From sequence record NC_071039.1: DNA of 64,000 nt; one strand, written 5' to 3'. The notes beneath the pieces are model-generated. The model ran no database searches, was not told the origin of the DNA, and saw only the letters and a list, made by a program, of their open reading frames with translations. Positions 26,750-53,451 of the stretch are shown one piece after another. The translations under genes were made by a program, and so were the position numbers. Position 1 is the first letter of the stretch. Each line of letters starts with the position of its first letter.

Positions 26750-27322
26750 ATGAGCATACTTACCTCTATATTAAATAATACTTTGAATTCAGTAGTGTTT
26801 GTTTATGGTAGAATGAATCCCCCTACAATAGGGCACGGAAAAGTTATATCAGAAATGCTAAAGATAGCAAAAGAATATAATGCTGCGCATTGTGTGTTTT
26901 TGTCTCATTCTTCTGGAAATAAAAAAAATCCATTACTTTGGGAAGAAAAAGTATCATATATGAAAATGTTTTTTCCTGGGGTAAATATTAACGAATCTAA
27001 AATAAATAATCCGTTTTCTGCGTTAGATTTACTTTCAAAAAAATATAAACATGTAACCTTTATTGCAGGAAGTGATAGATTAGAAGATTACAAGAGAAAT
27101 ATGCCTGCATATGCAAAAAATATAGGCATAGAATTAGACATAATATCGTCTGGTAATAGACTAGAAGAGAGTACCTCTATAGAAGGTGTAAGTGCATCTA
27201 AAGCAAGAAAATTAGTCTTAGAAAACAACTTTGAACTATTTTCTGAATTAATACCATCTAACGATATAGCAGAAAAAAGAAATTTATTTTTGCTGCTTCA
27301 AACTAGATTAATGGATAAGTAA
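26750..27322 (+). CDS. class I (HIGH) nucleotidyltransferase / cytidyltransferase-like
   Basis: YGRMNPPTIGH, KNPL, AGSDR and VSASKAR motifs. Confidence 0.82.
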   Translation: MSILTSILNNTLNSVVFVYGRMNPPTIGHGKVISEMLKIAKEYNAAHCVFLSHSSGNKKNPLLWEEKVSYMKMFFPGVNINESKINNPFSALDLLSKKYKHVTFIAGSDRLEDYKRNMPAYAKNIGIELDIISSGNRLEESTSIEGVSASKARKLVLENNFELFSELIPSNDIAEKRNLFLLLQTRLMDK

Positions 27323-30553: not shown

Positions 30554-30578
30554 AAGCCGTGCTTTTGCGCGGCTTTTT
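30554..30578 (+). terminator. intrinsic terminator
   Basis: AAGCCGTGC-TTTT-GCGCGGCTTTTT. Confidence 0.75.
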
Positions 30579-30594
30579 ATTTTGTAGGACAATT

Positions 30595-33006
30595 ATGTAC
30601 ATCGATATTTTCGAAGATAAGAAAAATGAAATACTTCTAGTTGCAGAACGATCTGCAGGCAAACGAATATACAAACAATACCCTATAGATCATACATATT
30701 ACATATTAGATGCAAACGGACCGTATAAAGATATATTCGGTAATAATGCTAAAGCCATTAAGCCATCTAGCATAAATGAAAAAATGACTCAAATGAAAAT
30801 GCTAGATTTTTCGCAAACGTGCGAAATAGACGTCAGGCCAGAATTTAGATGCTTGGAAGTAAACTATAAGAATGCACCTATGCCAAATTTGCATGTTGCA
30901 TTCTTCGATATCGAGACCGCGTTTGATCAAAAACGCGGTTATGCCGACCCGGCTGATCCTTTTAATCCCATTATATCAATATCTGTATATTTGCAATGGA
31001 TGCAGCAAATGGTTTGCTTAGCATTAGCACCGGAGACTATATTACCAGAAGATGCACAACGCATAGCATCAGAAGTAGGCGAAACAATTATATGTAAAAA
31101 TGAAAAAGAAATGCTAAGTATGTTTATTGACTTAGTAGAAGATGCAGATATTTTATCAGGTTGGAACTCAGAACGTTTCGATATTCCTTATACTTTTAAC
31201 AGAATTGTAAAATTATTAGGTAAGAATGAACTAAGAAAATTATGCCTTTGGAATCTTATGCCCAAGAAGCGCAATATTGAACAAGAAGGCGGCAGTAGTT
31301 TTGTTACATTCGAAACGTTTGGTAGAATACATTTAGATTATCTTCAATTATATAAAAAATATAATTACGAAGAACGTCATAGTTACTCGTTAGATTCTAT
31401 TTCGGAAATCGAACTAGGTGAACGAAAAGTTCCATACAACGGAACATTAGACAAACTTTATAAATATGATTTTAAAAAGTTTTTAGAATATAACATTCAG
31501 GATACTCGACTCCTAGATAAGTTAGATAGAAAATTAAAATATATAGATCTAGCTTCCACCATTGCACATAGTAATTGCATTCCTATCCCTACTGTTATGG
31601 GTGCAGTAGCTACAACCGAACAAGCAATTATAATCGAAGCACATAATAACGGCATGGTAGTGCCATCTAGGCAACGTTTTAAAAATAATGATACACTTAA
31701 AGCTGCGGGCGGTTGGGTAGCATATCCTAAAGTAGGACTGCATAGAGATATTGGCTCCAGTGACTTAAATTCTCTGTATCCTTCTGTGTTAAGGGCACTA
31801 AACATGAGCCCAGAAACTATTGTAGGACAAGTTCGGTTAACACTTACTAACCCTGCAATCGAAGAATGGTGTGCAAAAGGCGGAACAAAACATACATTTG
31901 CTGCATGGTGGAACGATAGGTTTACCACTTTAGAAATGGAATATGTGTTAAACAAAGACAGGGGTACTATATTAACGTTAGATATGGCAGACGGGCGTTC
32001 GTTTGAACTGTCAGGTGCCGAAATATACGAATTAGTATTCAACAGTGGTCAGAATTGGCATATCAGTGCTAACGGAACTATATTTACACAAGACAGAGCA
32101 GGTGTAATTCCGTTACTACTTACAAGATGGTATGCAGAACGTAAAGGGATGCAGAAAATTGCATCAGATTATAATTCTTTAGATAAAGAACACCATAGCG
32201 ACAAAACTGTATTTTTAGAAGATAAATCAGTATTAGATGGAATATGCGTAGGCGAAGTTGAATTAGCAGACCATTATAATATTAATGATGTATATGTTGC
32301 AGCTACATTAAAAAATCTTGTCGAATCAAAAAATTGGCAAGAAGTAGCAATATATATGAAAAAGTATGGACTAGAAGTGTCGTCTGACAATTCAATTGTT
32401 ATGTCAGATTCCCATATGCAAAACGAATATTACGAATATTGGGATAAAGCCCAGTTAGTTCGTAAAATTGGATTAAACAGCTTATATGGCGGACTACTTA
32501 ACGAACATTCTAGATTCTACGATAAAAGACTAGGACAGAGTACTACACTTACTGGGCGCTGTATCACTAGACATATGGCTTCTAAAACAAACGAAATGTT
32601 TACTGGCATTTACGATCATGAAGGCGATTGTGTAATTTATGGCGATACAGATAGTGTAGATGGATCAACTATCCTAAATACTTCTCTAGGTAAAATAACT
32701 ATAGAAGAATTGTTTAATGTGTCTGACAAGCATGTAGTTCATGCAGAAAAAGAATTTGCTTCGAATGAAGATGTTATGGTAATGTCGTGGGACAATTCTG
32801 CAAAACAACCATATATGGGGCATATAAACTATGTGTACCGCCACGAAGTAGAAAAAGAGCTATTCGAAATAGAAGACAACAGCGGAAATAAAGTTATAGT
32901 AACCGAAGATCATTCTATTATGGTTATACGTAACGCAGAACTTCTAGAGGTTAAACCCACAGATTTAACAGATAGTGATATAATATTATCTATTGTATAT
33001 GAATAA
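30595..33006 (+). CDS. family B DNA polymerase, N-terminal half, fused to split-intein N part
   Basis: Exo I FFDIET, Exo II SGWNSERFDIPY, Exo III YNIQD, motif A DLNSLYPS, motif B KIGLNSLYG, motif C YGDTD, then the sequence turns into an intein N-half and stops. ATG 30595 (TAGGA SD) preferred over GTG 30559. Confidence 0.95.
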   Translation: MYIDIFEDKKNEILLVAERSAGKRIYKQYPIDHTYYILDANGPYKDIFGNNAKAIKPSSINEKMTQMKMLDFSQTCEIDVRPEFRCLEVNYKNAPMPNLHVAFFDIETAFDQKRGYADPADPFNPIISISVYLQWMQQMVCLALAPETILPEDAQRIASEVGETIICKNEKEMLSMFIDLVEDADILSGWNSERFDIPYTFNRIVKLLGKNELRKLCLWNLMPKKRNIEQEGGSSFVTFETFGRIHLDYLQLYKKYNYEERHSYSLDSISEIELGERKVPYNGTLDKLYKYDFKKFLEYNIQDTRLLDKLDRKLKYIDLASTIAHSNCIPIPTVMGAVATTEQAIIIEAHNNGMVVPSRQRFKNNDTLKAAGGWVAYPKVGLHRDIGSSDLNSLYPSVLRALNMSPETIVGQVRLTLTNPAIEEWCAKGGTKHTFAAWWNDRFTTLEMEYVLNKDRGTILTLDMADGRSFELSGAEIYELVFNSGQNWHISANGTIFTQDRAGVIPLLLTRWYAERKGMQKIASDYNSLDKEHHSDKTVFLEDKSVLDGICVGEVELADHYNINDVYVAATLKNLVESKNWQEVAIYMKKYGLEVSSDNSIVMSDSHMQNEYYEYWDKAQLVRKIGLNSLYGGLLNEHSRFYDKRLGQSTTLTGRCITRHMASKTNEMFTGIYDHEGDCVIYGDTDSVDGSTILNTSLGKITIEELFNVSDKHVVHAEKEFASNEDVMVMSWDNSAKQPYMGHINYVYRHEVEKELFEIEDNSGNKVIVTEDHSIMVIRNAELLEVKPTDLTDSDIILSIVYE
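32653..33003 (+). mobile_element. split intein N-fragment (117 aa)
   Basis: Starts SVDGSTIL directly after YGDTD (block A), KITIEELF, and block B VIVTEDHSIMV, followed by the stop codon. Confidence 0.9.
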
Positions 33007-34681
33007 AGAATATTATCAGTCATACGCAAAAGAATTAAAAAAGAATAATAAGAAAGAATACAATCGTATTCTTTCTTTGTATGAGCCTGTATTCGATAAA
33101 TGGGTTGCATTTAAGTATTATATAAAAGGAATATCGCCGCCTGTATGTAAAGAATGTGGTAATAGAATAACTGTTTCGGCAAAACAAGCAGAATATCACA
33201 CAGAATGCAAATATAATAAACACAAGTATTCATTTGATAAATTTATAAAATGCATAGATGATGACCAATACATATATTGTGTGTGGAATGGATATATTTC
33301 AACATCTGACAATATAACATACAGATGCACTAAACACGGCATAATTGTTCAAAAACTTAGTTCTAGACTAAAAGGTCACAAATGCCAAAAATGTTCAGCT
33401 GAGCGTAAAGTAAGTCTAGATAACTTTAATAACTGGAAAACGCAGTGTTCTAAAATACATAATAATTTTTATGATTATTCTGTATCTACTGATTTTACAT
33501 TCTTAACAAAAGATGTATCTATTAAATGTCCAATACATGGAATATTTAAACAAAAAGCAAACGTCCATCAATCAGGTCACGGTTGTAAACAATGCTCGTT
33601 CGAAGCCATCGGTCATAGATTATCATATGACACAGATTCTTTTATAGAAAGAAGTAACAATGTTCATAATAATTTTTATGACTATACCAAAACTATATAC
33701 ACTAACATTAGAGATAAAGTTATTATAACATGTCCGATACACGGCGACTTTAATCAGATAGCATATTATCATACTGCCGGACACGGTTGTCAGAAATGCG
33801 ATTTAGATAAAGTAGCAGAAACTACCTATAGATCTAAGGCAGAAATAGAAATATTTGATTTAGTTAAATCTTATTGCTCAGATACAATTCATTCATACAA
33901 TAAATTCGGGTTCGAATTAGACATATATGTTCCTAGTAAAAATCTTGCAATAGAATATAATGGACTTTATTGGCATTCTTCTAAACATATAGAAACTGAT
34001 CAAAAGTATAAAACATACCATCTTGATAAAACCACTACATGTGAACATAATAATATCCAATTATTACACATTTTCGACAACGAATGGCATACTAAAAAAG
34101 ATATATGGATCTCGGTAATAAAAAATAAACTAGGTTTATCTAATAAAATATATGCAAGAAAAACAGAAATTAAAGAAGTTAATTTCGATGATGCAAAACA
34201 ATTCGCCGAAACGAATCATTTGCAGGGTCATGCACAATTTCGGCATGCATACGGACTGTATTATTTAGATCAATTAGTTTCTTTATTAACAATTGCAAAG
34301 CCCAGGTTTAATAAAAATGCAAACTGGGAAATAGTAAGATTTTGTAACCTAAATAACATAAGTGTAATAGGTGGGTTTTCTAAATTATTAAAGGTAGTTT
34401 CTTGTAATTTTACAGGCAAGATAGTATCATATGCAAATAGGCGCTGGTCCGCAGGAAACGTTTATGAAAAAAACGGATTTGCCAAAACTTCAATAATAGC
34501 TCCTGGATTTTATTATACTGACTTCAAAGATACATATAATAGATTATCTTTCTCTAAAGACAAGGCAAAAGTTAAATTAAAAAATTATAATAATTCAGTT
34601 AGCGTAGTAGAAAATATTTACGCAAACGGATATGGCAGGATTTGGGATTCAGGAAATATTGTTTATACAAAGGATTTATAA
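32999..34681 (+). CDS. free-standing homing-type endonuclease (Zn-finger repeats + Vsr/EDxHD-like nuclease + GNAT-like tail)
   Basis: CxxHG...GHxCxxC repeats, SKAEIEI...ELDIYVP...AIEYNGLYWH, then IYARK...HLQG...WEIVRFC...GGFSKLL...SYANRRWSAGNVY. ATG 32999 overlaps the end of polB-N (track start TTG 32993). Confidence 0.85.
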   Translation: MNKEYYQSYAKELKKNNKKEYNRILSLYEPVFDKWVAFKYYIKGISPPVCKECGNRITVSAKQAEYHTECKYNKHKYSFDKFIKCIDDDQYIYCVWNGYISTSDNITYRCTKHGIIVQKLSSRLKGHKCQKCSAERKVSLDNFNNWKTQCSKIHNNFYDYSVSTDFTFLTKDVSIKCPIHGIFKQKANVHQSGHGCKQCSFEAIGHRLSYDTDSFIERSNNVHNNFYDYTKTIYTNIRDKVIITCPIHGDFNQIAYYHTAGHGCQKCDLDKVAETTYRSKAEIEIFDLVKSYCSDTIHSYNKFGFELDIYVPSKNLAIEYNGLYWHSSKHIETDQKYKTYHLDKTTTCEHNNIQLLHIFDNEWHTKKDIWISVIKNKLGLSNKIYARKTEIKEVNFDDAKQFAETNHLQGHAQFRHAYGLYYLDQLVSLLTIAKPRFNKNANWEIVRFCNLNNISVIGGFSKLLKVVSCNFTGKIVSYANRRWSAGNVYEKNGFAKTSIIAPGFYYTDFKDTYNRLSFSKDKAKVKLKNYNNSVSVVENIYANGYGRIWDSGNIVYTKDL

Positions 34682-34936
34682 ATGCATAATCTAACAAAAC
34701 ACCTTTTAGGTGTATTTTCTGCAAAAACAGAAGACGAAGAATATAACAGTGCAAAAAGAGCGTTAGAAGAATTAAACAAAAATATAAAAGAAAGAGATCC
34801 TAATAAATTTAATGTGTCTTTAGGAAAGGTATCTAAAGTAACTAATTTAGGAAAAAAGAAACAATATGTATACGATATAGGGATGAAAAATCCCGATAAT
34901 CCGTATTTCTTTGGAAATAATATATTAGTTCACAAT
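34682..34936 (+). mobile_element. split intein C-fragment (85 aa)
   Basis: KVSKVTNLG...YVYDIGM (block F) and FFGNNILVHN (block G), followed by S-CYF, which restores polymerase motif C (YGDTD|SCYF). Confidence 0.9.
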
Positions 34937-35821
34937 TCTTGCTATTTTACTGCATGGCCTGCAGTAAAAGACCTTGTAGAATCTGGTGAAATGGAATGGG
35001 ATAAAGATACTGTCATTAAATTATACGACAACGTTTCGTCACAAGTAAGTGATACATTTCCAGAATTTTTAAAACAAACATTTAACGTTCCATATAAAAA
35101 CTCAGAAGGTGTTATTAAGTCAGGTAGGGAAATTGTAGCTACTTCTGGTCTTTTTATTAAAAAGAAACGTTATGCTGCTATGATGTATGATAAAGAAGGT
35201 ACTAGATACGACGACGAAAACAGCCCAGGAAAAGTAAAAGCAATGGGTTTAGACTTACGTCGGTCAGATACGCCTAAATTTGTCCAAACATTCCTTATGG
35301 AAATTCTAGTTATGGTGCTAACACATAAAACAGAAGATGAAGTAATAGAATATATTAGAGAATTTAAAAAAGAATTTAATAAAATGAAACCGTGGGAAAA
35401 GGGAATGCCAAAAGGCGTCAACGGTATCAGTACATATGAAGATAAATTAGAAGAACACATGAATAAAAAGTTAGCAGGAAGAGAGTCTAGAATCACTGTC
35501 CCCGGTCACGTGTCTGCTGCGATGAATTGGAATAAACTAAAGCTTATCAATAAAGACCTACATACTCCTAAAATCTCAGATGGTCAAAAATGTGTTGTTT
35601 GTTATTTAAAAGAAACAGCAGACAATCATTTCACTAGTATAGCATATCCTGTAGATGAATTGCACTTACCAGAATGGTTTACGTCTTTGCCATTTGATGA
35701 AGATTTAATGAGAGAAAAAGTAGTAGATAACAAAGTTAAGAACCTTTTAGGTATTCTAAAATGGGATTTTAGTAAAACAGAAGAAGCTGCTGCACACTTC
35801 GATTCGCTGTTTGGTTGGTAA
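34682..35821 (+). CDS. split-intein C part fused to family B DNA polymerase, C-terminal half
   Basis: After HN: SCYF, KKKRYA, KAMGLDLRRSDTP, ITVPGHVSA. Own SD AAGGA at 34670-34674. Confidence 0.95.
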   Translation: MHNLTKHLLGVFSAKTEDEEYNSAKRALEELNKNIKERDPNKFNVSLGKVSKVTNLGKKKQYVYDIGMKNPDNPYFFGNNILVHNSCYFTAWPAVKDLVESGEMEWDKDTVIKLYDNVSSQVSDTFPEFLKQTFNVPYKNSEGVIKSGREIVATSGLFIKKKRYAAMMYDKEGTRYDDENSPGKVKAMGLDLRRSDTPKFVQTFLMEILVMVLTHKTEDEVIEYIREFKKEFNKMKPWEKGMPKGVNGISTYEDKLEEHMNKKLAGRESRITVPGHVSAAMNWNKLKLINKDLHTPKISDGQKCVVCYLKETADNHFTSIAYPVDELHLPEWFTSLPFDEDLMREKVVDNKVKNLLGILKWDFSKTEEAAAHFDSLFGW

Positions 35822-35901: not shown

Positions 35902-36648
35902 ATGATTGTAGACAATTTAAAGGACGTAGTTCGTAACACTCACGGTTTGGGTTTTATAGATACTGTTAAAATTATCGGTTCTGTAAATGAAACTAAATTA
36001 GAAGCTATGTCAACTAATAAAACTGTAGTTATGTACGGTTCTTTAAAAAAATCCATTCCGGGGTTAGACGATACTGTAGGTTTAAGTAGAATGTCTGTAC
36101 TGAGCGGTATGTTAAATTTCCCACCATATTCGGGAGATGATGCCGAAGTTTCTATTAAGAAACAAGAACGTAACGGTGAAGAAATTCCTGCAGAAATTGT
36201 ATTTTCTTCTTCGACGGGTCATAAATCGTCGTACCGGTTTATGGCACGAGATACAGTAGACGAAGTGCTAAAAGTTCCGCCGTTTAGAGGAGTTGTGTGG
36301 GATATAGTTATTCAACCTACTAAGCAAGCGATGAAAGATCTTCAATATTTTAGTGCTGTATTGGGTTCTTATGAATCTAACTTTTTAGTTAAAGTAACAG
36401 ACGGTGTTTTAGAATTCCACATAGGTACCGGTGCTACTAGCGACCGTACTGTTGTACCATTTGCAAAAGATGTCAAGAGCACATTACGCAATAACTGGTC
36501 CTGGCCATTACCGGAAGTGTTAGCAATTCTAAAAAACGCAGATAGTGGCAAATGTACTATGTCTATTTCTAGTCAGGGTGCATTGATGATCGAACTCGAC
36601 ACTGGGCTAATAGAAGTTCAATATATTCTTCCTGCAAAAAGTGCATAA
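35902..36648 (+). CDS. probable sliding clamp (gp45-like)
   Basis: 248 aa, clamp-sized, two-domain alpha/beta pattern, C-terminal YILPA, directly after polB; the clamp loader is also in the window. Confidence 0.6.
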   Translation: MIVDNLKDVVRNTHGLGFIDTVKIIGSVNETKLEAMSTNKTVVMYGSLKKSIPGLDDTVGLSRMSVLSGMLNFPPYSGDDAEVSIKKQERNGEEIPAEIVFSSSTGHKSSYRFMARDTVDEVLKVPPFRGVVWDIVIQPTKQAMKDLQYFSAVLGSYESNFLVKVTDGVLEFHIGTGATSDRTVVPFAKDVKSTLRNNWSWPLPEVLAILKNADSGKCTMSISSQGALMIELDTGLIEVQYILPAKSA

Positions 36649-36651: not shown

Positions 36652-36912
36652 ATGATCTTACCTGCTCGTAAATTAGTTAAATTGCAATACTATATTGTAC
36701 AGGAATCTTACAATTCTATAGGTAGACCAATAACTACAGTTACTCTTGTATACAGAAAATATATATTTTTTACAAAGAAAGAAAAAATTATATTCGAGCG
36801 TATTAAGAAAACAGACAATTTGTATTATAAACAAGAATCCGAAAAAGAGTTGTGTGAACAACTAAGTGTATGGGCAAAAAGAACATTAAAAATATATGAT
36901 ATAGGGCAATAA
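36652..36912 (+). CDS. hypothetical protein
   Basis: 86 aa ORF followed by the hairpin ATAGGGCAAT-A-ATTGCCCTAT (36901-36921). Confidence 0.55.
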   Translation: MILPARKLVKLQYYIVQESYNSIGRPITTVTLVYRKYIFFTKKEKIIFERIKKTDNLYYKQESEKELCEQLSVWAKRTLKIYDIGQ

Positions 36913-36984
36913 TTGCCCTATATTTTTCATTTATAAATGAATTAACCTAAATACATATGCACTAAAGAATAATTAAGGAATATA

Positions 36985-38607
36985 ATGAAAAATTTATCAA
37001 ACAGTCAAAAAGATTATGCGATCTATTTGCCTGCAATTAGTGGGTTTTACACAAAACAATTAGACAGTTCTATTAACGATCCGTCTACAAGAAAAATACC
37101 TAGCTTTCCTAATGGATATAATACTCTTAATTTTTTAGATCCATCTAGCGATACTTTCTTTTACGGGTATGGGTTATATTCTGCAGGCCATGCAGAACTG
37201 TCTTTATCTAGAACTGATGCAAAAGAATGGATGATCCAAGCCAGGGACAAAACACAAACAACAGTTATTGCAGATTCAGGTGGTTTCCAGGTAGCTACTG
37301 GTGTAATTAAATTAAACTGGGATGATTTTAAAGGAGCTAGCGGAGATAAAATAAGAAATGAAATTTTAAAATGGTGTGAACATACCGCCGACTGGTCAAT
37401 GACACTAGATGTTCCTGCGTTTGCTGCTACTCCTCCGTACAGTTCAAAAACCGGTCTTAATAAATTCGAAGATACATTAGATTATTCTCTTCATAATTTA
37501 CATTATTACATGAAGAACAGAACTCCTGGCGCAACTAAATTCCTTAGTGTATTATCAGGATCAGATGTAGATACATCTAAAATTTGGTACGACAACGTAA
37601 AAGCATTTAGTGACCCTGCTAAAGTAGTAGAAATGGGATATCCAGCTAGTCATACACTCGAAGGGTATGCATTTGCTGGTATAAACATGAGAAATATGTA
37701 TTGTGCTCTTTCTCGATTCTTAGATCTAATAGATGATAATATTATTTCAGATAAAAACTGGATACACTTTCTTGGACTAGGAAGGACTGATTGGGCTTGT
37801 TTCTTAACATCTATTCAGCGAAATATAAGAAAACATTATAATCCCAATATTAACATAAGTTTTGACGCAGCTTCTCCGTTTGTTTCTGTGGCATACGGTC
37901 TTGCATATAACTATAATTATTTTAATCCCAAACGGTGGGGATATAATATGGATTCTGCCCCAGACAGTAGAGAGTTTAGTGATAAAGATATTCCTATGCC
38001 GTTTATGAGTCCTATTATGGAAAAATTATCATTAAAAGACATATGTCCATATCACAATGGTTATGGTATAATAAATGGTGTTAAAAATGCAAACTTTACA
38101 AAAGAAGATGTAGAAACTGCTCTTAAAGAAGGAAAAGATGCAGAATACGTGCCGCCGAGCGCAAATAAAAATGGTAAAGTAGGTAAAACCAGTTGGGATT
38201 CACTTAGTTACTTATTAATAATGAATCATAATGTTTACAATCATATAGCTGCAATCCAAGAATCTAATAGATTAGTCGATATAGAACGGTTGCGAGTTAA
38301 AGTAGATTACCGAGATTGGACTAGAGATAAAAAGAAAGGTACTATAGAAGTAAGTAATCACGTCCCTAGTTCGATTTTATATTTTGACCATTTCGTAGAA
38401 GTATTGCTAGATCCGAGTACTCCTAATAAGCGACAATTACTAGAAGATTATAGACCTATGCTAGACAGCATTAGTTTCGGTAATTATAACTCAAACTCAT
38501 TTAATAGTCTTTTTGATGTAGATGCTACTGCAATTGAAGATGAAAATAAGTTTGCAGACATAAACGACGAAAAACTAACTGAATTAGAACAAGGATTAGA
38601 CAATTAA
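36985..38607 (+). CDS. tRNA-guanine transglycosylase-fold protein, probable DNA 7-deazaguanine transglycosylase (DpdA-like)
   Basis: IADSGGFQ, MTLDVP, HFLGLG and SFDAASP motifs of the TGT fold; 540 aa; clustered with QueE-like and QueD-like genes. Confidence 0.82.
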   Translation: MKNLSNSQKDYAIYLPAISGFYTKQLDSSINDPSTRKIPSFPNGYNTLNFLDPSSDTFFYGYGLYSAGHAELSLSRTDAKEWMIQARDKTQTTVIADSGGFQVATGVIKLNWDDFKGASGDKIRNEILKWCEHTADWSMTLDVPAFAATPPYSSKTGLNKFEDTLDYSLHNLHYYMKNRTPGATKFLSVLSGSDVDTSKIWYDNVKAFSDPAKVVEMGYPASHTLEGYAFAGINMRNMYCALSRFLDLIDDNIISDKNWIHFLGLGRTDWACFLTSIQRNIRKHYNPNINISFDAASPFVSVAYGLAYNYNYFNPKRWGYNMDSAPDSREFSDKDIPMPFMSPIMEKLSLKDICPYHNGYGIINGVKNANFTKEDVETALKEGKDAEYVPPSANKNGKVGKTSWDSLSYLLIMNHNVYNHIAAIQESNRLVDIERLRVKVDYRDWTRDKKKGTIEVSNHVPSSILYFDHFVEVLLDPSTPNKRQLLEDYRPMLDSISFGNYNSNSFNSLFDVDATAIEDENKFADINDEKLTELEQGLDN

Positions 38608-39668
38608 TGAAAGTTATAATAATCCCCATCGAATCAATAGAAACTCGGTATACGTCAGAATGGAATATGTTTCTTAAACCGCAACTAGAAAAGTATATAG
38701 ACGAATCCGGTCTCGATGCAGAAATAGTTCAAATTGATGTAAACTATGTTGACGAAGGCACCTCTGCGGGCGCCTTCCTTAACTTTGCAAATACAAACAT
38801 ATTCAAAAGCAATCAATTCATTAAATTAGCAAGTATAATAGAAACTTTAAACGATAACGATGTTGTTCTTTATACAGACGCATGGAATCCCACAGTAGTT
38901 CAACTAAATTACATGCGATCGTTAATGAATAAAAAATTTAAAATAATGGGGTTGTGGCACGCCGGTTCGTATGATCCGCATGATTTTTTAGGAAGGCACT
39001 TTGATAAAAATTGGTCATATGAATTTGAAAGATCATTATATAATATATATGATGTAAATTTCTATGCAACTAATTTTAGTAAAGATCTCATGATAGATAA
39101 CCTTTTTGGTAAAACAGCTAACGTAAACAGACACGATATAGTAGGTTGGCCAATGGAATATTTAGTTGACCAACTTACACCTTCTACTAACAAGACAGAT
39201 ACTATATTATTTCCTCATCGAATTTCTCCGGAAAAACAACCAAATATATTTAAAAAATTAAGATCATTACTTCCTAACTACGAGTTTGTTTTTGCACAAG
39301 AAACTAAATTGTCAAAGGCAGAATATCATACACTTCTTAAACGTTCTAAAATTGTCTTTTCGGCTTCGTTGCAGGAAACATTGGGTATAGGTTTCTACGA
39401 AGGTGCATTAGTCGGTGCAATTCCGTTATTGCCTGACCGATTGTCTTATAAAGAAATGACAGAAAATGTAAAAAACAGAAATTTGTATGTATATCCAAAT
39501 GAATGGACTATTTCGGAAAATCTAGCAGACCTAAAAAATTTAGTTACCCTAATAGATTATACTATGCGTAATTATAATTTTATAGTAGAAGAAATGAAAC
39601 TTAATTTACTGCCCGAATTAAACAAATATTATAACGGAACAGAGTTGTATAAAAGAATTTTAAAATAA
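38607..39668 (+). CDS. GT-B glycosyltransferase (GT4-like)
   Basis: FPHRISPEKQP...FSASLQETLGIGFYEGALVGAIPLLP...SYKE (EX7E-type motif); TAATG overlap with the dpdA-like gene. Confidence 0.8.
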   Translation: MKVIIIPIESIETRYTSEWNMFLKPQLEKYIDESGLDAEIVQIDVNYVDEGTSAGAFLNFANTNIFKSNQFIKLASIIETLNDNDVVLYTDAWNPTVVQLNYMRSLMNKKFKIMGLWHAGSYDPHDFLGRHFDKNWSYEFERSLYNIYDVNFYATNFSKDLMIDNLFGKTANVNRHDIVGWPMEYLVDQLTPSTNKTDTILFPHRISPEKQPNIFKKLRSLLPNYEFVFAQETKLSKAEYHTLLKRSKIVFSASLQETLGIGFYEGALVGAIPLLPDRLSYKEMTENVKNRNLYVYPNEWTISENLADLKNLVTLIDYTMRNYNFIVEEMKLNLLPELNKYYNGTELYKRILK

Positions 39669-39752
39669 TTTCCATTTAATATTCTGCATACAATTTACAT
39701 TTTAATACGAAAACATTATAATATTACAAAATTAAAAATAAGGATTATTTTT

Positions 39753-40130
39753 ATGGGAATTAAACGATGGATCGAAGTTCCTTTTCAAAAAGAAGGAATT
39801 CACATGTACCCTGGTGCAGATAACAACCCTGCACTAGCTACAAATGATTGGAAAGATGTATCTTTTTTAGGATATCCTCATTTTCATTATTTTTATTTTA
39901 CTGTTAAAATTGAAGTTTTTCATAATGAACGAGATATCGAATTTATTCAATTTAGACGGTTCTTAGAAAGACTGTATAGTGAATCTCTGCTAAAACTAGA
40001 TGGTAAATCTTGTGAAACTATGGCAGAAGAATTATATGAACAAATTAACATTGTATATCCTAACAGGGACGTTGTGATTACAGTGGCAGAAGACAATATT
40101 AATAAAGCTGTTTTAGAATTTTTCAAATAA
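39753..40130 (+). CDS. QueD/PTPS-like T-fold protein
   Basis: EGIH, PHFHYF (HxH), DIEF and SCETMAEELY resemble 6-pyruvoyl-tetrahydropterin synthase family signatures; 125 aa. Confidence 0.6.
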   Translation: MGIKRWIEVPFQKEGIHMYPGADNNPALATNDWKDVSFLGYPHFHYFYFTVKIEVFHNERDIEFIQFRRFLERLYSESLLKLDGKSCETMAEELYEQINIVYPNRDVVITVAEDNINKAVLEFFK

Positions 40131-40144
40131 GCAAGGATGCTATT

Positions 40145-40405
40145 ATGTATAATAAACAACTGTCAGGAATATATACTACTACAACGATAAACTCTATGCC
40201 AGCTAGCTACTCCGGTTTAACGGATCTAGGCATGTATGATACAGAACTTTCGGTATTGAGGAAAAAGATAGAACAGATAGAAAAAATGTTGTGTATGTTA
40301 GAAGTAGATAAATTACTTTCAGAAAAATATCCTGCATTAAAATCTGCATATGACGAATACGAAGTCATATTATCTATCATAAACGGTACGGAGAAAAAAG
40401 AGTAA
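40145..40405 (+). CDS. hypothetical protein
   Basis: 86 aa; C-terminal KYPALKSAYDEY. Confidence 0.6.
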   Translation: MYNKQLSGIYTTTTINSMPASYSGLTDLGMYDTELSVLRKKIEQIEKMLCMLEVDKLLSEKYPALKSAYDEYEVILSIINGTEKKE

Positions 40406-40924
40406 ATGGCAATGCGTGTCATTATTACTGGTTGTAACGGTTATGTTGGTAAAACAGTAAGCAAATACTATTATACATTAGGATATAATGTAGTGGGATT
40501 TGATTTAATTAATTCAAAAAATAGTTACATAACTAATTTTTATCAAACTAGCTATGCATCTAGTATCGCAGAAGATATAATACTCGAGTCTGATGCAGAC
40601 ACGCTTATTCATTGTGCTGTAGAAAAAAGCAATACATTACAACAACATTTCTACCACAATAGTATTCAATTTATAAACTTATTATCAGTATTAAAAAATA
40701 CTTCTATAAAAGAAATAATAGTATTTAGAAATAAAAGTGCAGAAAATAATGATGCCCTTTTAAAACTCTCTAATAACACTAATAAAGACTATTTAGAAGA
40801 ATTTTCTAAATCGACAGGAATTAATTCAAAAATATATAATTTGTTAGATAAGAATAATGAACAACACATTATAGAATTAGTACAACCGTATTTAGAATTA
40901 AGTAAACACTTTTATATATTTTAA
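40406..40924 (+). CDS. truncated/degenerate NAD-dependent epimerase (SDR)-like protein
   Basis: RVIITGCNGYVG Rossmann motif, VVGFD, LIHCA. Only 172 aa and no evident YxxxK. Confidence 0.6.
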   Translation: MAMRVIITGCNGYVGKTVSKYYYTLGYNVVGFDLINSKNSYITNFYQTSYASSIAEDIILESDADTLIHCAVEKSNTLQQHFYHNSIQFINLLSVLKNTSIKEIIVFRNKSAENNDALLKLSNNTNKDYLEEFSKSTGINSKIYNLLDKNNEQHIIELVQPYLELSKHFYIF

Positions 40925-40935
40925 GGAGATATTAT

Positions 40936-41370
40936 ATGTACGATAAAAATTTTGTATCAATGGATCAAATGCCAGTTATTGTCAGTGACTTGGTTAGTGA
41001 AATAGACGAAGCAGGAATTTCTCCTAAAGTTATTATTGCTATTAGCAAAGGTGGACTAATTCCTGCCACTATGATTAGCTATTATTATGATTGCCCTATT
41101 GTAACATACGATCCGGTAGAAGATTGTTTTAGTACAAATAATGATATAAGTTCTGAATGCATTATCGTAGATGATGTTATCGATACAGGCAATACTGTAA
41201 ATTCTGTTATTTCTTTGTTAGAAGACGAATTCTTTTTTACAAAAGAAGACATTAGTAAAATTAGAGTAGCATCAATATTTGCAACAAGAAATAATACAAT
41301 TGTAGATTTTTATCATGACGAAATAAGTTACCATGATTCGGTAAGTTTTGAATTTAAACAATTTATTTAA
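40936..41370 (+). CDS. type I phosphoribosyltransferase (xanthine/guanine PRT-like)
   Basis: IAISKGGLIPA and IIVDDVIDTGNT (PRPP-binding loop). Confidence 0.85.
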   Translation: MYDKNFVSMDQMPVIVSDLVSEIDEAGISPKVIIAISKGGLIPATMISYYYDCPIVTYDPVEDCFSTNNDISSECIIVDDVIDTGNTVNSVISLLEDEFFFTKEDISKIRVASIFATRNNTIVDFYHDEISYHDSVSFEFKQFI

Positions 41371-41440
41371 TATAAAGTTATTCTTTACTTTTAGTATGAT
41401 TGCGTTTATAATGTATATTATAAAATAAAGCGGATTATGT

Positions 41441-42313
41441 ATGAAACACAGATATACTGAAAAGTTTTTCTCAGTCCAGGGAGAAAGCCTACATACCGGA
41501 AAACTATGCACTTGGCTTAGATTTTTCGGATGTTCGTTGCAATGTAGGGGCTTTGGACAAAAAGAACCTGGAAATCCCGAAACATGGGTAGAACAACGAC
41601 CGGATTTAATAGATGTAACAAACATTACAGATTATAAACAATTACCGACTCCTAAGTATGGATGTGATTCAGACTATTCTGTATTTGCTAAATTTAAACA
41701 TCTTGCAACAGAAGTCGATCCTGTTGTAGTTGCAAATGAAATAAAACAATTAATTCCTAGTAAAACATTTGGTAAAAAAATAGGTCATGTATTTACGGGC
41801 GGAGAACCGTTAGTAAACCAAGAATCTATAGTAGATATAGTAAATTATTGGATAGATACTAATGATTATCCTGCATGGATAGGAATAGAAACAAATACAA
41901 CTAGACCGTTAGAAAAATGCTTAATCGATTTAGTTAACAGATGTAAATCGATTGGTGTGCAATTTTATTTTTCTATGTCACCCAAACTACTTCATGTAGC
42001 AGGTGAACAACCCAAACGAGCTATCCATATAAATTTAATGAAGGAATATATAGATATTGCACCGGATAGCTATCTAAAATTTGTAGTAAATGAAGATCAG
42101 CGATCGTGGGATCAAGCAAAAAGTATAGTAGACACATTAAATGCTGACGGGTATTTACCAGATGTGTGGGTTATGCCAGTCGGAGGCATTTATTCCCAAC
42201 AAACAGACCCAGTAATTGGAAGACTTGCAGATAAAGCTATCTTCGAATACGAATGGAATGTTAGTTTACGTGTTCACGTATTAACCTGGGGTGACGATCA
42301 ACTAGGTAGGTAA
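41441..42313 (+). CDS. queE: 7-carboxy-7-deazaguanine synthase (radical SAM)
   Basis: EKFFSVQGE, RFFGCSLQCRGF...GCDSDYS, FTGGEP, IETN, SMSPK, LKFVV, VMPVG, SLRVH. Confidence 0.9.
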   Translation: MKHRYTEKFFSVQGESLHTGKLCTWLRFFGCSLQCRGFGQKEPGNPETWVEQRPDLIDVTNITDYKQLPTPKYGCDSDYSVFAKFKHLATEVDPVVVANEIKQLIPSKTFGKKIGHVFTGGEPLVNQESIVDIVNYWIDTNDYPAWIGIETNTTRPLEKCLIDLVNRCKSIGVQFYFSMSPKLLHVAGEQPKRAIHINLMKEYIDIAPDSYLKFVVNEDQRSWDQAKSIVDTLNADGYLPDVWVMPVGGIYSQQTDPVIGRLADKAIFEYEWNVSLRVHVLTWGDDQLGR

Positions 42314-42317: not shown

Positions 42318-42737
42318 ATGAACCGTATTATCCTTTCTGTAGTGTTTAGTTTAATATCGTCGTATGCAGTATGCGGAGAAAATAAATCCTATATAAATCC
42401 GCATCTTCATGGAAAATGCGTCGGGATGGTTACTAAACTGTCTGAATATGCAAATACCGAAGTATTAACTTTAAAATTGTATAATATAGGTCAGGTACTT
42501 CATGCATACGGCAAATACACTGCACTAAAATCGAATAATGCAGATACAGCACTGTATGATCAAGGATTAGTTGACGGAAGAGAAACAGTTTCTAAAAATA
42601 TAGAAAATAACAATTTTAATGTTTTAGTAAAATATTATGAAGATAATTGTCTAGAAATATTTTACAAATCTGCAGACTGGTTATATCATAATAACATACA
42701 TCAGTTCAATAAATTAACGGATATTTTTAATAAATGA
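42318..42737 (+). CDS. hypothetical protein with signal peptide-like N-terminus
   Basis: MNRIILSVVFSLISSYAVCG hydrophobic leader. Confidence 0.6.
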   Translation: MNRIILSVVFSLISSYAVCGENKSYINPHLHGKCVGMVTKLSEYANTEVLTLKLYNIGQVLHAYGKYTALKSNNADTALYDQGLVDGRETVSKNIENNNFNVLVKYYEDNCLEIFYKSADWLYHNNIHQFNKLTDIFNK

Positions 42738-43345
42738 AAAAAAGATTATTTCCATTTTGGTTATGGCCATATAGCTGGGGATTACCTGCTAAACAGAAAG
42801 CTATTGCAAAAGCAGAGTATTATCTCGAAGGAGAAGAATTAGATAGGGAATTAGTAGCACTATCGAATACAACAAGCAAAGCCAAAGAAATTGAATTGTT
42901 ACATATTGATTTTAAATATGGTAAAATAACAGAATACGAATACGATGTTGCTTTAGCTAAAACTCAATACGATCCGGGTCTAGCTTTAGACTTAAAATTA
43001 GCTGATATAGATTTAAAGCATCATAAAATAAATGAAAGGGAACATAGCAAACGAATTGCTACCTTAAGAAAGTTACCTTGGGTAGATATAATAAAGATAG
43101 GCTTGTCTTCTTCTGATATTTCGACAGGAGAAATGGAATTAGACTGGAATGAATATTTTATAGAAGAATTGCACGAATACGGATATGTAGGTAGGACTGA
43201 CGAAGAAGTAGTAAATTTATGGTTATCTACTTTATGTAAAAATATCGCATTAGACGAATTCGGAGGAATGGGATCTGTAGACGATCTTTCAGAAGATAAT
43301 GACAAAATAGATAGCAAAGAAAACTATAAAAGGGAAGTTAAGTAA
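42734..43345 (+). CDS. hypothetical phage protein
   Basis: 203 aa, overlapping starts and stops with both neighbours. Confidence 0.75.
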   Translation: MKKRLFPFWLWPYSWGLPAKQKAIAKAEYYLEGEELDRELVALSNTTSKAKEIELLHIDFKYGKITEYEYDVALAKTQYDPGLALDLKLADIDLKHHKINEREHSKRIATLRKLPWVDIIKIGLSSSDISTGEMELDWNEYFIEELHEYGYVGRTDEEVVNLWLSTLCKNIALDEFGGMGSVDDLSEDNDKIDSKENYKREVK

Positions 43346-44331
43346 TGTCTAAAACTTATATTTTAATCGATACATTCAACATGTTTCATAGAGCAAAACA
43401 TGTAATCAGGTCCTCCTCGTTAGATGAAAAAGTAGGCATGTGTCTTCATGTAATGTTTAACAGTATACGCAAAGTATACAGAGACCATTCTGCAGATCAT
43501 GCTGTGTTTTGCATAGAAGGCAAATCTTGGCGGAAGGACTTTTATAAAGAATATAAGTTCAACCGAACAGCAGCTAGAATGGCAAGAACAGAAGCTGAAA
43601 TCGAAGAAGATGCTGCTTTAATGGAAGCATATAACGATTTAATTACATTCATTAATGATAAAACAAATTCTAGCGTACTACATCACCATAAAGCAGAAGC
43701 AGATGATATGATAGCTACTTGGATTCAAAATAATCCAAATGATAATCATATTATTGTTAGTTCAGACAGCGATTTTTTCCAGCTATTAGCACCTAACGTT
43801 AAAATATATAATGGAATTACAGAACAACTAATTACATTAGAAGGTTTCTTTGATAATAAAGGCAAACCTGTAATTGATAATAAAACAAAGAAACCAAAAG
43901 TGGCTCCTGATCCTAAATGGTTATTATTTGAAAAATGCATTAGGGGAGATAAATCTGATTTTATTTTTGCGGCGTACCCGGGTGCAAGAGAAACTAGTTC
44001 TAAAAATAAAGTAGGCATGCGTGAAGTATTTGCCGATATGGATAATAAAGGTTACGCATGGAATAATTTTATGTTGACAAAAATTACAGATTCTGCTGGT
44101 AATGAATTTGTTGTTCACGATAAGTACGAATTTAACAAAACACTAATTGACTTAACTTGTCAGCCAGATGATCTAAAAACAGAATTTAAAACAGTCACAG
44201 ATGTAGCTCGTAATAAACCGCCCGTATCTAACGTAGGCATCCATTTTTTAAAATTCTGTAATAGATGGGCACTAGAGCAAATCTCTAAATATCCAGACGA
44301 ATTTGCAAAACTTCTTAATGCTAAACCATAA
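43345..44331 (+). CDS. rnh: T4 RNase H-like 5'-3' exonuclease / flap endonuclease
   Basis: ILIDTFNMFHR, WRKDFYKEYKFNR, EADD, SSDSDFFQL, GDKSD. Confidence 0.9.
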   Translation: MSKTYILIDTFNMFHRAKHVIRSSSLDEKVGMCLHVMFNSIRKVYRDHSADHAVFCIEGKSWRKDFYKEYKFNRTAARMARTEAEIEEDAALMEAYNDLITFINDKTNSSVLHHHKAEADDMIATWIQNNPNDNHIIVSSDSDFFQLLAPNVKIYNGITEQLITLEGFFDNKGKPVIDNKTKKPKVAPDPKWLLFEKCIRGDKSDFIFAAYPGARETSSKNKVGMREVFADMDNKGYAWNNFMLTKITDSAGNEFVVHDKYEFNKTLIDLTCQPDDLKTEFKTVTDVARNKPPVSNVGIHFLKFCNRWALEQISKYPDEFAKLLNAKP

Positions 44332-47875: not shown

Positions 47876-48077
47876 TTGCCCTTTTTTAATGATTAAAAAA
47901 TTACGTTTTACTATGTTGACTAACTATATAGTTATTTGCTTTAATAACATCCTGCTTTGCAAAACAACAAATAATAGCATTCATAAAAATTGTTAATTAT
48001 GTGTTGTTTTAAAAGCTACAAGCTGTAAAATGTAGGTGTTAAACAGCAAAACATATTCAACCACAGAGGCATTATAG

Positions 48078-49193
48078 ATGGCTAAAAAAGAAAACATCGT
48101 AGAAACGTATCTTCGTCCGACGGAGTGTGCTGCAATTATCCGCGGCATGTTCAAGGCGAAGCGTCCTGTGTTCCTCTGGGGTCCGCCGGGGGTAGGCAAG
48201 TCGGATATCATCGCCCAGTTGGGTTTCGAGGCTGACCGGCCGGTCATCGACATGCGTCTGATCCTCATGGATCCCACTGATATTAAGGGCATTCCGTACT
48301 ACGATCCGAAAACCAATACCATGCGCTGGGCTATTCCGTCCGATCTTCCGCAACCCGGCGAAACTACCCTGGACAACGCCATCCTGTTCCTGGACGAAAT
48401 GAACTCGGCGCCGGCGAGCGTGCAGGGCGCTGCGTATCAGCTCATCCTGAACCGTGCTATCGGTTCGTATAAGCTGCCCGATGGCGTCGACATTGTCGCT
48501 GCTGGTAACCGCGATACCGACAAGGGCGTTACTTATCGTATGCCTAGTCCGTTGGCCAACCGTTTCGTTCACTTGCAGATCGAAACCAACTTCGAGGACT
48601 GGCAGCAGTGGGCGCTTAACAACACGGTACACCCGGATGTAGTTGGCTACCTCACCCAGCACAAGCAGAACCTGTTCTGCTTCGATCCCCAAGATCGTAG
48701 CAAGGCGTTTGCTACTCCGCGAGCTTGGAAGTTCGTGTCCGACATCCTCCAACTCGCAGGAATCAACAAGGACCATCTGCTACGTGCGACTATCGCAGGA
48801 ACCGTCGGCGAAAGTCACAGCTACTCCTTCATGCAGCACATGAAGTATGCTTCGCAGCTTCCGAAGCCGGAAGATGTACTAACCGGCCGGGTAACCGATC
48901 TCAAAGTCGAAGAGATCAGTGCTCGTTACTCGCTCGTGGTCAGTATGTGCTACACTCTAAAAGAGTGGCTGGCTGACGTAGCTGACGCCGACAAAAAGTA
49001 CACTACCGAGGATTGGCACAAGTCGGTAAACTTGTTCTTCGAGTACATGATGAACAACTTTGCCCAAGAAATGGTCATCCTCGGCGCGCGTACTGCGTTG
49101 CGCGAATACCAACTGCCGATCAACAGAAAGTTGATCCCTTGCTTCACTAAGTTCTTCCAAGAGTACGGCAAGTTTATTGTCGACTCGAACTAA
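48078..49193 (+). CDS. MoxR-type AAA+ ATPase
   Basis: Walker A GPPGVGKS, IDMRL...DPTDIKG, Walker B LFLDEMN, AAGNR, PLANRF, TPRAW. Markedly GC-richer than its flanks. Confidence 0.9.
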   Translation: MAKKENIVETYLRPTECAAIIRGMFKAKRPVFLWGPPGVGKSDIIAQLGFEADRPVIDMRLILMDPTDIKGIPYYDPKTNTMRWAIPSDLPQPGETTLDNAILFLDEMNSAPASVQGAAYQLILNRAIGSYKLPDGVDIVAAGNRDTDKGVTYRMPSPLANRFVHLQIETNFEDWQQWALNNTVHPDVVGYLTQHKQNLFCFDPQDRSKAFATPRAWKFVSDILQLAGINKDHLLRATIAGTVGESHSYSFMQHMKYASQLPKPEDVLTGRVTDLKVEEISARYSLVVSMCYTLKEWLADVADADKKYTTEDWHKSVNLFFEYMMNNFAQEMVILGARTALREYQLPINRKLIPCFTKFFQEYGKFIVDSN

Positions 49194-49201
49194 GTAAGGG
49201 C

Positions 49202-49234
49202 AAAATAAAAGGGGCTTAAAGCCCCTTTTATTTT
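49202..49234. terminator. bidirectional terminator
   Basis: AAAATAAAAGGGGCT-TAA-AGCCCCTTTTATTTT. Confidence 0.85.
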
Positions 49235-49262
49235 ATATATTCATAGGATACAGAATTATAGA

Positions 49263-49718
49263 ATGAGAACACTAACTTCATCTTTGTTTGTCATTATAAT
49301 GACATTAGTAAATATCCTTTCTGTAATATATATGTATGTTACTAATGTGCCATTAATTTATATGCTTGTTGCAGTTCCTAATCAGTGTGTTATATCATTA
49401 ATTTCTTGTGTATACAGAAAAATCATAGCAGAATTTTTTTATATAAAGAGATTTAGTTTTTATAAACTAGAAGTCGTTTTAGACAAGCAAAGAGGGAGCT
49501 CAACAAAATATATTTTAAAATTAAATGTATTAGGTGAAACATATTATTACGATTTTCATGACAATCCTTTTTGCTGTCTTCCTATTTATGCGAATTTCTA
49601 TACTAATTCAGAATCATTGGCACTTAACACATTCCAAAGGTATGAAGACCAAGCTGAGCTATATAAAAAGAGCAGCGCCATTACTACTGTAATAAAATCT
49701 AGTAAAGGTACTAAGTAG
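49263..49718 (+). CDS. membrane-anchored hypothetical protein
   Basis: Two N-terminal hydrophobic helices followed by a soluble domain. Confidence 0.6.
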   Translation: MRTLTSSLFVIIMTLVNILSVIYMYVTNVPLIYMLVAVPNQCVISLISCVYRKIIAEFFYIKRFSFYKLEVVLDKQRGSSTKYILKLNVLGETYYYDFHDNPFCCLPIYANFYTNSESLALNTFQRYEDQAELYKKSSAITTVIKSSKGTK

Positions 49719-49719
49719 T

Positions 49720-52024: not shown

Positions 52025-52038
52025 CATAATGTTATACT
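52010..52038 (+). promoter_or_regulatory. sigma70-type promoter
   Basis: TTGCAG-N17-TATACT; the -35 lies inside the last codons of the endonuclease gene. Confidence 0.6.
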
Positions 52039-52079
52039 TGTAACGTAACACAAAACATATCATTTTAACGGAGCATTAT

Positions 52080-53264: not shown

Positions 53265-53275
53265 TCGTAGGTTAA

Positions 53276-53309
53276 AACAAAAAAGGGGCTTATAAGCCCC
53301 TTTTTTGTT
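53276..53309. terminator. bidirectional terminator (perfect 34 bp palindrome)
   Basis: AACAAAAAAGGGGCTTATAAGCCCCTTTTTTGTT. Confidence 0.88.
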
Positions 53310-53363
53310 GACTAGTTTTAACTACTTAAAGCGCTGTAGCATAGCTGTACATAAGCGCTAAAT

Positions 53364-53451
53364 TAGCGCAAATTTGCGTGTTTTTATGCGTTACAATACA
53401 TAGCTAATACTACGCATGCAAAACGCGCTATAGCGCAAATTTGCGTGTTTT
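53364..53451. repeat. 21 bp direct repeat pair with 12 bp palindromic core
   Basis: TAGCGCAAATTTGCGTGTTTT at 53364-53384 and 53431-53451; core CGCAAATTTGCG. Confidence 0.85.

Follow-up and report, generated by a model that had tools for sequence, protein, structure and literature searches.

Does the region behind the DNA polymerase genes of the Pseudomonas jumbo phage vB_PaeM_PA5oct (PA5oct) encode a pathway for replacing guanine in the phage DNA, and does the glycosyltransferase (GT) encoded there put a sugar on the new base? The locus lies in a stretch of 64,000 nucleotides from sequence record NC_071039.1, which is called the window here. An initial annotation had described a 7-deazaguanine DNA-modification cluster at window positions 36985-42313. 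In this cluster a gene of the tRNA-guanine transglycosylase (TGT) fold was thought to be translationally coupled to a GT and followed by QueD-like, short-chain dehydrogenase/reductase (SDR)-like, purine phosphoribosyltransferase (PRTase) and QueE genes. The inserted base was suggested to be 7-carboxy-7-deazaguanine (CDG) or a precursor supplied by the host, which would then be glycosylated. The region is identical (100 %) to positions 222985-228313 of the PA5oct record MK797984.1, window positions being record positions minus 186,000, and ten sister phages share 98.6-99.2 % identity with it. All of the described genes are real open reading frames (ORFs), numbered gp168 to gp162 in RefSeq. It is likely that they form the core of a phage-encoded pathway replacing guanine in PA5oct DNA with a 7-deazaguanine; the part played by the GT is more tentative.

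Neither as a single protein nor with family profiles did gp168 have a match in Pfam, NCBIfam, PHROGs, PADLOC or the PDB sequences, and its tie to TGT and DpdA came solely from fold comparison and profile-profile alignment. In a Foldseek search of the PDB with the AlphaFold (AF2) model (predicted local distance difference test, pLDDT, 87.9; predicted template modelling score, pTM, 0.88; 37 homologues in the alignment) the best six matches were all TGT/QTRT enzymes (E 7e-5 to 1.4e-2, probability at least 0.98). Generic TIM barrels scored much weaker, so that the fold named in the initial annotation is confirmed. Among viral models, gp168 matched its homologue from Vibrio phage 2.275.O, a 'tRNA guanine transglycosylase' of Achromobacter phage Motura (1.4e-10), a protein of Vibrio phage nt-1 (1.1e-8) and DpdA3 of Cellulophaga phage phiST (Foldseek E 5.7e-3, probability 1.0).

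The DSGGFQ motif noticed before is located at residues 97-102. When the gp168 family is aligned with Escherichia coli Tgt (hhalign 83 %, E 8.4e-6), D97 falls on the Asp of DSGGFQ (D89), D142 on that of FDEC (D143) and D294 on that of MFDC (D264). From what is known about TGT we take D97 to be the general acid/base, D142 the base-binding residue and D294 the covalent nucleophile. D97, S98, G100, H261, G264 and D294 (in 'SFDAASP') are, among others, invariant in 53 diverse family members, and D142 ('TLDVP') is near-invariant. The Asp triad is strictly conserved over more than 1000 representatives, and therefore an active transglycosylase is favoured. Furthermore, the family aligns with DpdA of Acidovorax phage ACP17 (hhalign 96.9 %, E 1.9e-10; hidden Markov model (HMM) 2e-12), the catalytic Asp being in register.

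With respect to the known DpdA proteins, gp168 is thus homologous to the ACP17 enzyme but does not share its branch: pairwise BLAST separates PA5oct, the marine phages, Sinorhizobium phage Phosso and the Vibrio phage from ACP17 and Xanthomonas phage X1. The phiST DpdA3 (CGPG_00065) is remote from both branches, with no BLAST match to gp168 and a marginal one by hhalign (63.7 % over 84 columns). At 90 % identity the gp168 family, which is unannotated, falls into more than 1600 clusters, and clustering at 50 % leaves 1020 representatives; most members have 500-600 amino acids, and many are found on contigs of 100-400 kb. Within the TGT/DpdA superfamily gp168 founds this extensive branch of long proteins, which has no name as yet, and it is the best candidate for a DNA guanine transglycosylase in the cluster.

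The gene initially called QueD-like, gp166, has the fold of QueD but a different identity. Its model (pLDDT 91.9) is a T-fold with beta-beta-alpha-alpha-beta-beta topology whose best 24 PDB matches are all QueD/PTPS (template modelling score 0.70-0.73 for E. coli QueD), and a zinc-type His triad (H17/H43/H45) is invariant in the family. Sequence profiles of gp166 gave no match with the PA5oct QueD proteins, PTPS or PDB sequences. The catalytic Cys of the QueD motif CxxxHGH is not present, a Leu standing in its place. The family consensus FLGxPHRHIFHF equals the signature of DpdL, which is described as a QueD paralogue with CxxxHGH turned into LxxxHRHxF (Cui et al. 2023, PMC10516641); the corresponding motif of PA5oct is LGYPHFHYF, starting at L39. 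By hhalign the gp166 family matches DpdL of phiST (CGPG_00067) over the full length (99.1 %, E 1.2e-18) and DpdL of ACP17 (gp125; 100 %, E 2.4e-50). Because of the fold, the signature and these alignments gp166 is a DpdL and not a QueD. According to the article text of Cui et al., DpdL occurs in phages with DpdA, FolE, QueD and QueE and without QueC, and its proposed role is the decarboxylation of CDG to 7-deazaguanine (PMC10516641). By analogy, gp166 is a proposed CDG decarboxylase.

The QueE and PRTase assignments were borne out. gp162 matches the QueE-like PHROG with 6.6e-49, and 25 of 25 family members match QueE models, five in number, with a best value of 4.4e-22 but in no case reaching the curated cut-off; the cluster cysteines C31 and C35 are invariant, C75 is near-invariant and the TGGEP motif is found. 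By these sequence features gp162 is a divergent QueE, solid at family level. gp163 exceeds the cut-off of Pribosyltran (PF00156, 2e-11, 43.9 vs. 26.3 bits) and contains the PRPP (phosphoribosyl pyrophosphate) loop VDDVIDTGNT; its nearest solved structures are purine (6-oxopurine) PRTases, the best being Sulfolobus GpT-2 (2.4e-6). The SDR-like gene gp164 stood in part: an Epimerase domain (6e-7) with GxxGxxG at residues 9-15 is there, but just its Rossmann half, and neither YxxxK nor a substrate-binding C-terminal half was found in its 172 amino acids. Relatives have a full-length epimerase/dehydratase of 312-328 amino acids at this site. The half-gene, which is about 99 % identical among PA5oct-like phages, is probably the remnant of an NAD-dependent sugar epimerase/dehydratase.

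The remaining genes for CDG were sought in the whole PA5oct genome, by reading the annotation in full and by searches with QueC, QueF, Gat and YhhQ of the Vibrio phage. FolE (gp231, GTP_cyclohydroI 1.5e-59) and two canonical QueD (gp230 and gp226, PTPS 2e-30 and 1.6e-21) are encoded at 168-172 kb of the record, about 55 kb upstream of the cluster and outside the window, and a precursor from the host is not needed. QueC, QueF and Gat were not found anywhere in the genome by annotation or with the Vibrio phage proteins; for the window, tblastn and annotation agreed with the earlier statement that these and FolE are missing. The PP-loop protein gp064 was considered as a hidden QueC and rejected, being of the TilS type (ATP_bind_3 1.7e-36) with no QueC match. 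Because QueC is absent genome-wide, the pathway halts before preQ0. PA5oct is able to make CDG itself and, with DpdL, presumably 7-deazaguanine; the predicted base is phage-made 7-deazaguanine, or CDG. Since gp166 is a DpdL, 7-deazaguanine would be expected by analogy with phiST instead of the CDG initially proposed. In addition, the genome encodes a ribonucleotide reductase (RNR), a deoxynucleoside monophosphate (dNMP) kinase and 12 tRNAs including tRNA-Asn.

The glycosyltransferase and its module in related loci

Against Glycos_transf_1 (PF00534) gp167 scores 19 bits and so misses the cut-off of 26.4, and the protein alone had no match among the PDB sequences, though these include the T4 glucosyltransferases. 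However, 19 of its 35 homologues match PF00534 (best 1e-10), a PDB search with the family profile finds PglH/WlaC and GlgM, both of GT4, and an E257-x7-E265 motif is found, E265 being invariant. At family level these sequence matches identify gp167 as a GT4-type glycosyltransferase with a predicted GT-B fold, in line with the initial annotation.

The place of this enzyme in the pathway was examined in 85 loci with gp168 relatives (80 from viral contigs, three from metagenomes and two from phages). The recurring order is polB, clamp, TGT-like gene, a gene for a protein of about 175 amino acids (f175), DpdL, GT, in some loci an epimerase, FolE, PRTase, QueE, gp160 and RNaseH. In about 80 of the 85 loci the TGT-like gene is preceded by the family-B polymerase gene (polB), and in 82 the clamp is present, which in relatives comes immediately before the TGT-like gene. 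Of 41 loci that extend at least 5 kb downstream, 40 have DpdL and 40 have the GT; of 32 that extend at least 9.5 kb, 28 have QueE, 24 the PRTase and 21 FolE. By family HMMs, both GT and DpdL are found in 40 loci and neither of them in three, and f175 accompanies the pair in 39 of the 40. The distribution of the GT follows those of DpdL and f175 and not that of the TGT-like gene. In one of the three negative loci, that of Vibrio phage 2.275.O, the QueC/QueF/Gat branch is used: the gp168 homologue adjoins QueF, YhhQ, QueC, Gat and FolE. This phage had been listed among those with pathway genes but no DpdA (Hutinet et al. 2019). The second is a contig with QueE directly after the TGT-like gene, and in the third, Phosso, the TGT-like locus lies apart from the phage's own DpdL-GT-FolE-QueE block. 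Phosso has two blocks of the polymerase-clamp type, one (the second polB-clamp pair) followed by DpdL-GT-FolE-QueE, the other, with a clamp-like gene and then primase/helicase, carrying the TGT-like gene.

The GT adjoins DpdL or DpdA in four separate lineages, including ACP17, X1 (order GT, TGT, DpdL, QueE) and Phosso. Three abundant marine GT homologues, picked independently, are all located within the module (3/3). A more distant homologue in Xanthomonas phage PhiXhv-12 lies amid amino-sugar genes with no deazaguanine genes. These data support that gp167 is a genuine, conserved member of the deazaguanine module, as the initial annotation had proposed, although for another reason. The TAATG overlap between gp168 and gp167 is real (the stop TAA and the start ATG share one A at 38605-38609), but it is no evidence for coupling: among 19 gene junctions around the cluster 7 overlap or abut, the same one-base overlap exists at gp160/RNaseH, and in most relatives the GT follows DpdL and not the transglycosylase. 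Because such junctions are common here, the overlap alone is uninformative and translational coupling was rejected as a sign of a functional link, which follows instead from synteny and co-occurrence.

In 75 of 83 metagenomic loci the gene that immediately follows the TGT-like one is f175 (e.g. contig L095, 12426-12953). In PA5oct f175 is gp121 (record 252640-253146), about 25 kb from the cluster and outside the window, and in ACP17 gp122. It had no match with Pfam, PHROGs or PDB profiles, and is a core component of the pathway. A 177-amino-acid 'glycosylase' of Phosso was tried as f175 and rejected, as neither BLAST nor HMM supports it. Gene 469 of Vibrio phage 2.275.O was likewise discarded as a GT homologue, since it lacks similarity to gp167 and matches an amidoligase, albeit weakly.

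Some loci contain further genes. In X1 a 177-amino-acid PP-loop protein of the PAPS-reductase family (L098, 5332-5865) is encoded between FolE and GT, which might be a QueC-like or other amidating enzyme of the X1 lineage. The marine modules carry two 2-oxoglutarate (2OG)-Fe(II) oxygenases (L101, 7989-8597 and 11855-12496) and a HIT protein (L101, 13750-14172), none of which is present in PA5oct; in the marine phages the GT could thereby obtain a hydroxyl acceptor from the oxygenases. In 15 related loci a homologue of the cytidylyltransferase-like gp177, possibly a sugar-activating enzyme, is encoded upstream of the module at a distance of 5-9 kb.

Proposed pathway and its alternatives

In the proposed pathway FolE (gp231), QueD (gp230, gp226) and QueE (gp162) would convert GTP to CDG, as well-supported homology indicates. 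By analogy with phiST, gp166 would turn CDG into 7-deazaguanine, for which gp168 may exchange guanine in double-stranded phage DNA after replication; its gene lies directly behind those of the DNA polymerase and clamp. Because GT, f175 and DpdL are present or absent together, gp167, gp121 and gp166 would form one sub-module and act in the same tailoring branch. There gp167 may add a sugar to the deazaguanine, as a free base before insertion or within DNA. The PRTase gp163 might return excised guanine to GMP, and hence to GTP for FolE, or make a deazapurine nucleotide; guanine recycling is possible, and nucleotide synthesis as by TubE of tubercidin biosynthesis is an equally good reading.

A 2025 preprint reported that PA5oct is restricted by END nucleases, one of which, with a sensor domain resembling Ogg1 (an 8-oxoguanine glycosylase), acted exclusively on phages whose G is modified (PMC12191111). 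Together with the published restriction panel this suggests modified G in PA5oct DNA. QueE and PTPS of PA5oct were noticed in the preprint, with no transglycosylase, DpdL or GT being named (PMC12191111). The literature considered (for Cui et al. 2023 the article without its supplement) names no DpdA, DpdL or GT in PA5oct and reports no glycosylated deazaguanine in DNA.

Several points weigh against the proposed pathway. The zinc site of TGT (CxCxxC...H) was not found in gp168, which has 4 Cys in all and whose close family conserves only H69, H261, C272, C354, H415 and H420 among Cys and His. The Pfam TGT model PF01702 does not match gp168 and matches 2 of 53 family members (E 0.0058). 7-Deazaguanine has no hydroxyl group to serve as acceptor of a GT, and phiST makes 2'-deoxy-7-deazaguanine (dDG) without any GT. 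In gp166 of PA5oct the near-invariant R of the HRH motif is replaced by F. Some G-containing sites in PA5oct DNA are apparently cut, as inferred from ten enzymes tested, and the modification is therefore partial or tolerated by some enzymes. Finally, the decarboxylase activity of DpdL is no more than proposed even for the founding members, and DpdL of phiST and ACP17 expressed heterologously with their own DpdA gave no dDG (PMC10516641). Missing partner proteins may explain this failure in E. coli.

Two of these points, the lack of an obvious acceptor group and the dDG of phiST made without a GT, also speak for a GT which acts on another substrate (protein, lipid or cell-envelope precursor, other base) and whose gene simply accompanies the replication module. 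Sugars or lipids are the usual substrates of GT4 enzymes, the best matches among solved structures being PglH/WlaC and GlgM, and the PhiXhv-12 homologue is surrounded by amino-sugar genes. However, the perfect co-occurrence with DpdL, the position beside DpdL or DpdA in four lineages and the absence from Vibrio phage 2.275.O, the member with the QueC/QueF branch, argue against a mere passenger, and the huimycin enzyme HuiG provides a proposed precedent for a deazapurine acceptor (PMC7439116). A foreign substrate is considered unlikely; of the single roles open to gp167, adding a sugar to the deazaguanine is the likeliest, albeit tentatively assigned.

A pre-replicative route is improbable, even though several observations fit it. 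A TubE-like PRTase would join CDG or 7-deazaguanine to PRPP, kinases of phage or host and the phage RNR would give a 7-deaza-dGTP analogue for incorporation by the polymerase, and the TGT-like protein would have a secondary function, e.g. in proofreading or salvage. The PRTase is conserved in the module (24 of 32 loci) and in marine relatives adjoins the HIT protein, which handles nucleotides; PA5oct has RNR and dNMP kinase, the module sits among replication genes, and TubE itself is a precedent with CDG and PRPP (PMC6112128). Against this, ACP17 and X1 have DpdA, GT, DpdL and QueE with no annotated PRTase in the stretches read, and gp163 is closest to ordinary 6-oxopurine PRTases. Moreover, the strict conservation of the Asp triad speaks for an active transglycosylase, and the restriction pattern suggests site-dependent and not total replacement.

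Very improbable is a role of gp168 as a transglycosylase for phage or host tRNAs, with the DNA modification having another cause: its nearest solved structures are tRNA enzymes and PA5oct has tRNA genes including tRNA-Asn, but the homology to ACP17 DpdA, the fold match to phiST DpdA3, the constant place behind polB and clamp, the lack of queuosine-completing genes and of the canonical TGT zinc motif, and the modification signal in virion DNA all argue for a DNA enzyme.

The replacement of guanine by a 7-deazaguanine thus stays the preferred explanation of the locus. That PA5oct and abundant uncultured marine large phages carry a sugar-bearing 7-deazaguanine, made via a long DpdA-like enzyme and the trio of DpdL, GT4 and f175, is possible, if doubtful; in that case DpdL would not simply be a decarboxylase. 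The combination might give a new sugar-bearing DNA base, and the chance of a new DNA base is realistic. Known 7-deazaguanine DNA modifications protect phages from restriction. To our knowledge, none of the eight derivatives and five DpdA subfamilies on record involves a sugar, and a sugar-bearing 7-deazaguanine would, if true, be the first glycosylated purine hypermodification of DNA that we know of. With a candidate transglycosylase and DpdL now assigned in PA5oct, a cultured phage studied for therapy, the pathway becomes directly testable that is widespread among uncultured phages, the module with GT and f175 being common in marine viral metagenomes.

Gene layout and neighbouring genes

The seven ORFs of the cluster are co-directional (Table 1). 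Sigma-70-like near-consensus sites are found in both larger intergenic gaps, the second one at 41384-41412; over the whole region promoter-like matches are at chance level (52 found vs. 45.9 expected). Downstream of QueE, gp160 and RNaseH make up the conserved border of the module; they probably take no part in the chemistry.

Table 1 Features of the deazaguanine cluster and its surroundings in window coordinates (aa amino acids)
Feature	Position	Strand	Size or remark
Cytidylyltransferase-like gp177	26750..27322	+	Pfam match below cut-off
Family-B DNA polymerase, upstream anchor of the module	30559..35821	+	annotation; conserved
PCNA-like sliding clamp gp170	35902..36648	+	PAC2 annotation; phrog_12062
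Terminator-like hairpin between gp169 and the cluster, 12-bp stem then T run	36898..36924	+	consensus match alone
TGT-fold protein gp168, candidate DNA guanine transglycosylase	36985..38607	+	540 aa
GT4-type GT-B glycosyltransferase gp167	38607..39668	+	353 aa
Promoter-like site TTTACA-17-TATAAT, gap between GT and DpdL genes	39694..39722	+	weak lead
DpdL-family T-fold protein gp166 (QueD paralogue)	39753..40130	+	125 aa
gp165, poorly conserved protein	40145..40405	+	86 aa; present in 3/85 loci
Truncated SDR gp164	40406..40924	+	172 aa
Type I purine phosphoribosyltransferase gp163	40936..41370	+	144 aa
Divergent QueE gp162 (radical SAM CDG synthase)	41441..42313	+	290 aa
gp161, gp160, RNaseH/FEN (gp159)	42318..44331	+	downstream of QueE

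The polymerase ORF is split by an ORF for a Hef-like homing endonuclease of 562 amino acids (32993-34681) into parts of 815 and 379 amino acids; in relatives the family-B polymerase is a single ORF of 881-983 amino acids. gp170 is annotated as 'structural protein' in PA5oct, where it was detected in virions by mass spectrometry, vs. a PCNA-like clamp in the PAC2 record. gp161 (42318-42737) has an N-terminal hydrophobic stretch resembling a signal peptide and ending with Cys19-Gly, by which it might be secreted or be a lipoprotein; related loci show no conservation of this gene. Three GC-rich islands (8001-10000, 48001-50000 and 52001-54000; 0.41-0.45 vs. a background of about 0.33) exist in the window, the latter two coinciding with the genes for the ATPase gp149 and the homing/HNH endonucleases gp145 and gp144.

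Comparison with known systems

The canonical DpdA1/DpdA2 systems for preQ0, G+ and preQ1 (9g, CAjan) also exchange guanine after replication and are fed by FolE, QueD and QueE. However, they need QueC (and QueF, Gat-QueC or ArcS), none of which PA5oct has, and gp168 shows no detectable sequence similarity to DpdA1/DpdA2. With Tgt and QTRT1 it shares the fold, and three Asp residues are in register: the acid/base of DSGGFQ, the one that binds the base, and the nucleophile. In contrast to Tgt, gp168 has about 200 extra C-terminal residues, no CxCxxC...H and a DNA-replication gene context.

For the accessory enzymes, parallels exist in other pathways. TubE is a PRTase which joins CDG and PRPP (PMC6112128); it resembles gp163 in being of type I and in having FolE, QueD and QueE as genetic partners, but it serves secondary metabolism and not DNA modification, and gp163 is closest to ordinary purine PRTases. 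HuiG of the huimycin pathway is a GT4-type, GT-B enzyme proposed to put N-acetylglucosamine on N2 of a 7-deazapurine (PMC7439116). Like gp167 it is GT4-type; its proposed acceptor is the 2-amino group of the deazapurine, and it has no detectable sequence relation to gp167. The same lack of relation applies to the alpha- and beta-glucosyltransferases of T4, which are GT-B enzymes acting on a modified base in DNA. Their acceptors are hydroxymethyl groups on cytosine.

Among phages, phiST (DpdA3, DpdL and FolE/QueD/QueE; PMC10516641) has, according to the article text, the same pathway logic and gene set as PA5oct, without QueC, and in both a TGT-superfamily protein adjoins DpdL. However, its DpdA3 has 259 amino acids and is only marginally similar to the 540 of gp168; GT, f175 and PRTase, all present in PA5oct, are missing, and all G is replaced, whereas PA5oct DNA is apparently cut by some G-site enzymes. 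The closest cultured parallel is ACP17, with QueD, FolE, gp122, DpdA (gp123), gp124, DpdL (gp125) and QueE. Its DpdA (424 amino acids, phrog_10773) belongs to a different branch, with 22 % BLAST identity to gp168, and the stretch read contains no annotated PRTase, in contrast to PA5oct with gp163. The protein is treated as DpdA in the article text of Cui et al., where GT and f175 are not discussed and no modification of ACP17 DNA is reported (PMC10516641). The DpdA and GT genes of ACP17 overlap by 4 nucleotides, the f175 homologue lies upstream of them, and the order DpdA, GT, DpdL and QueE is shared with PA5oct.

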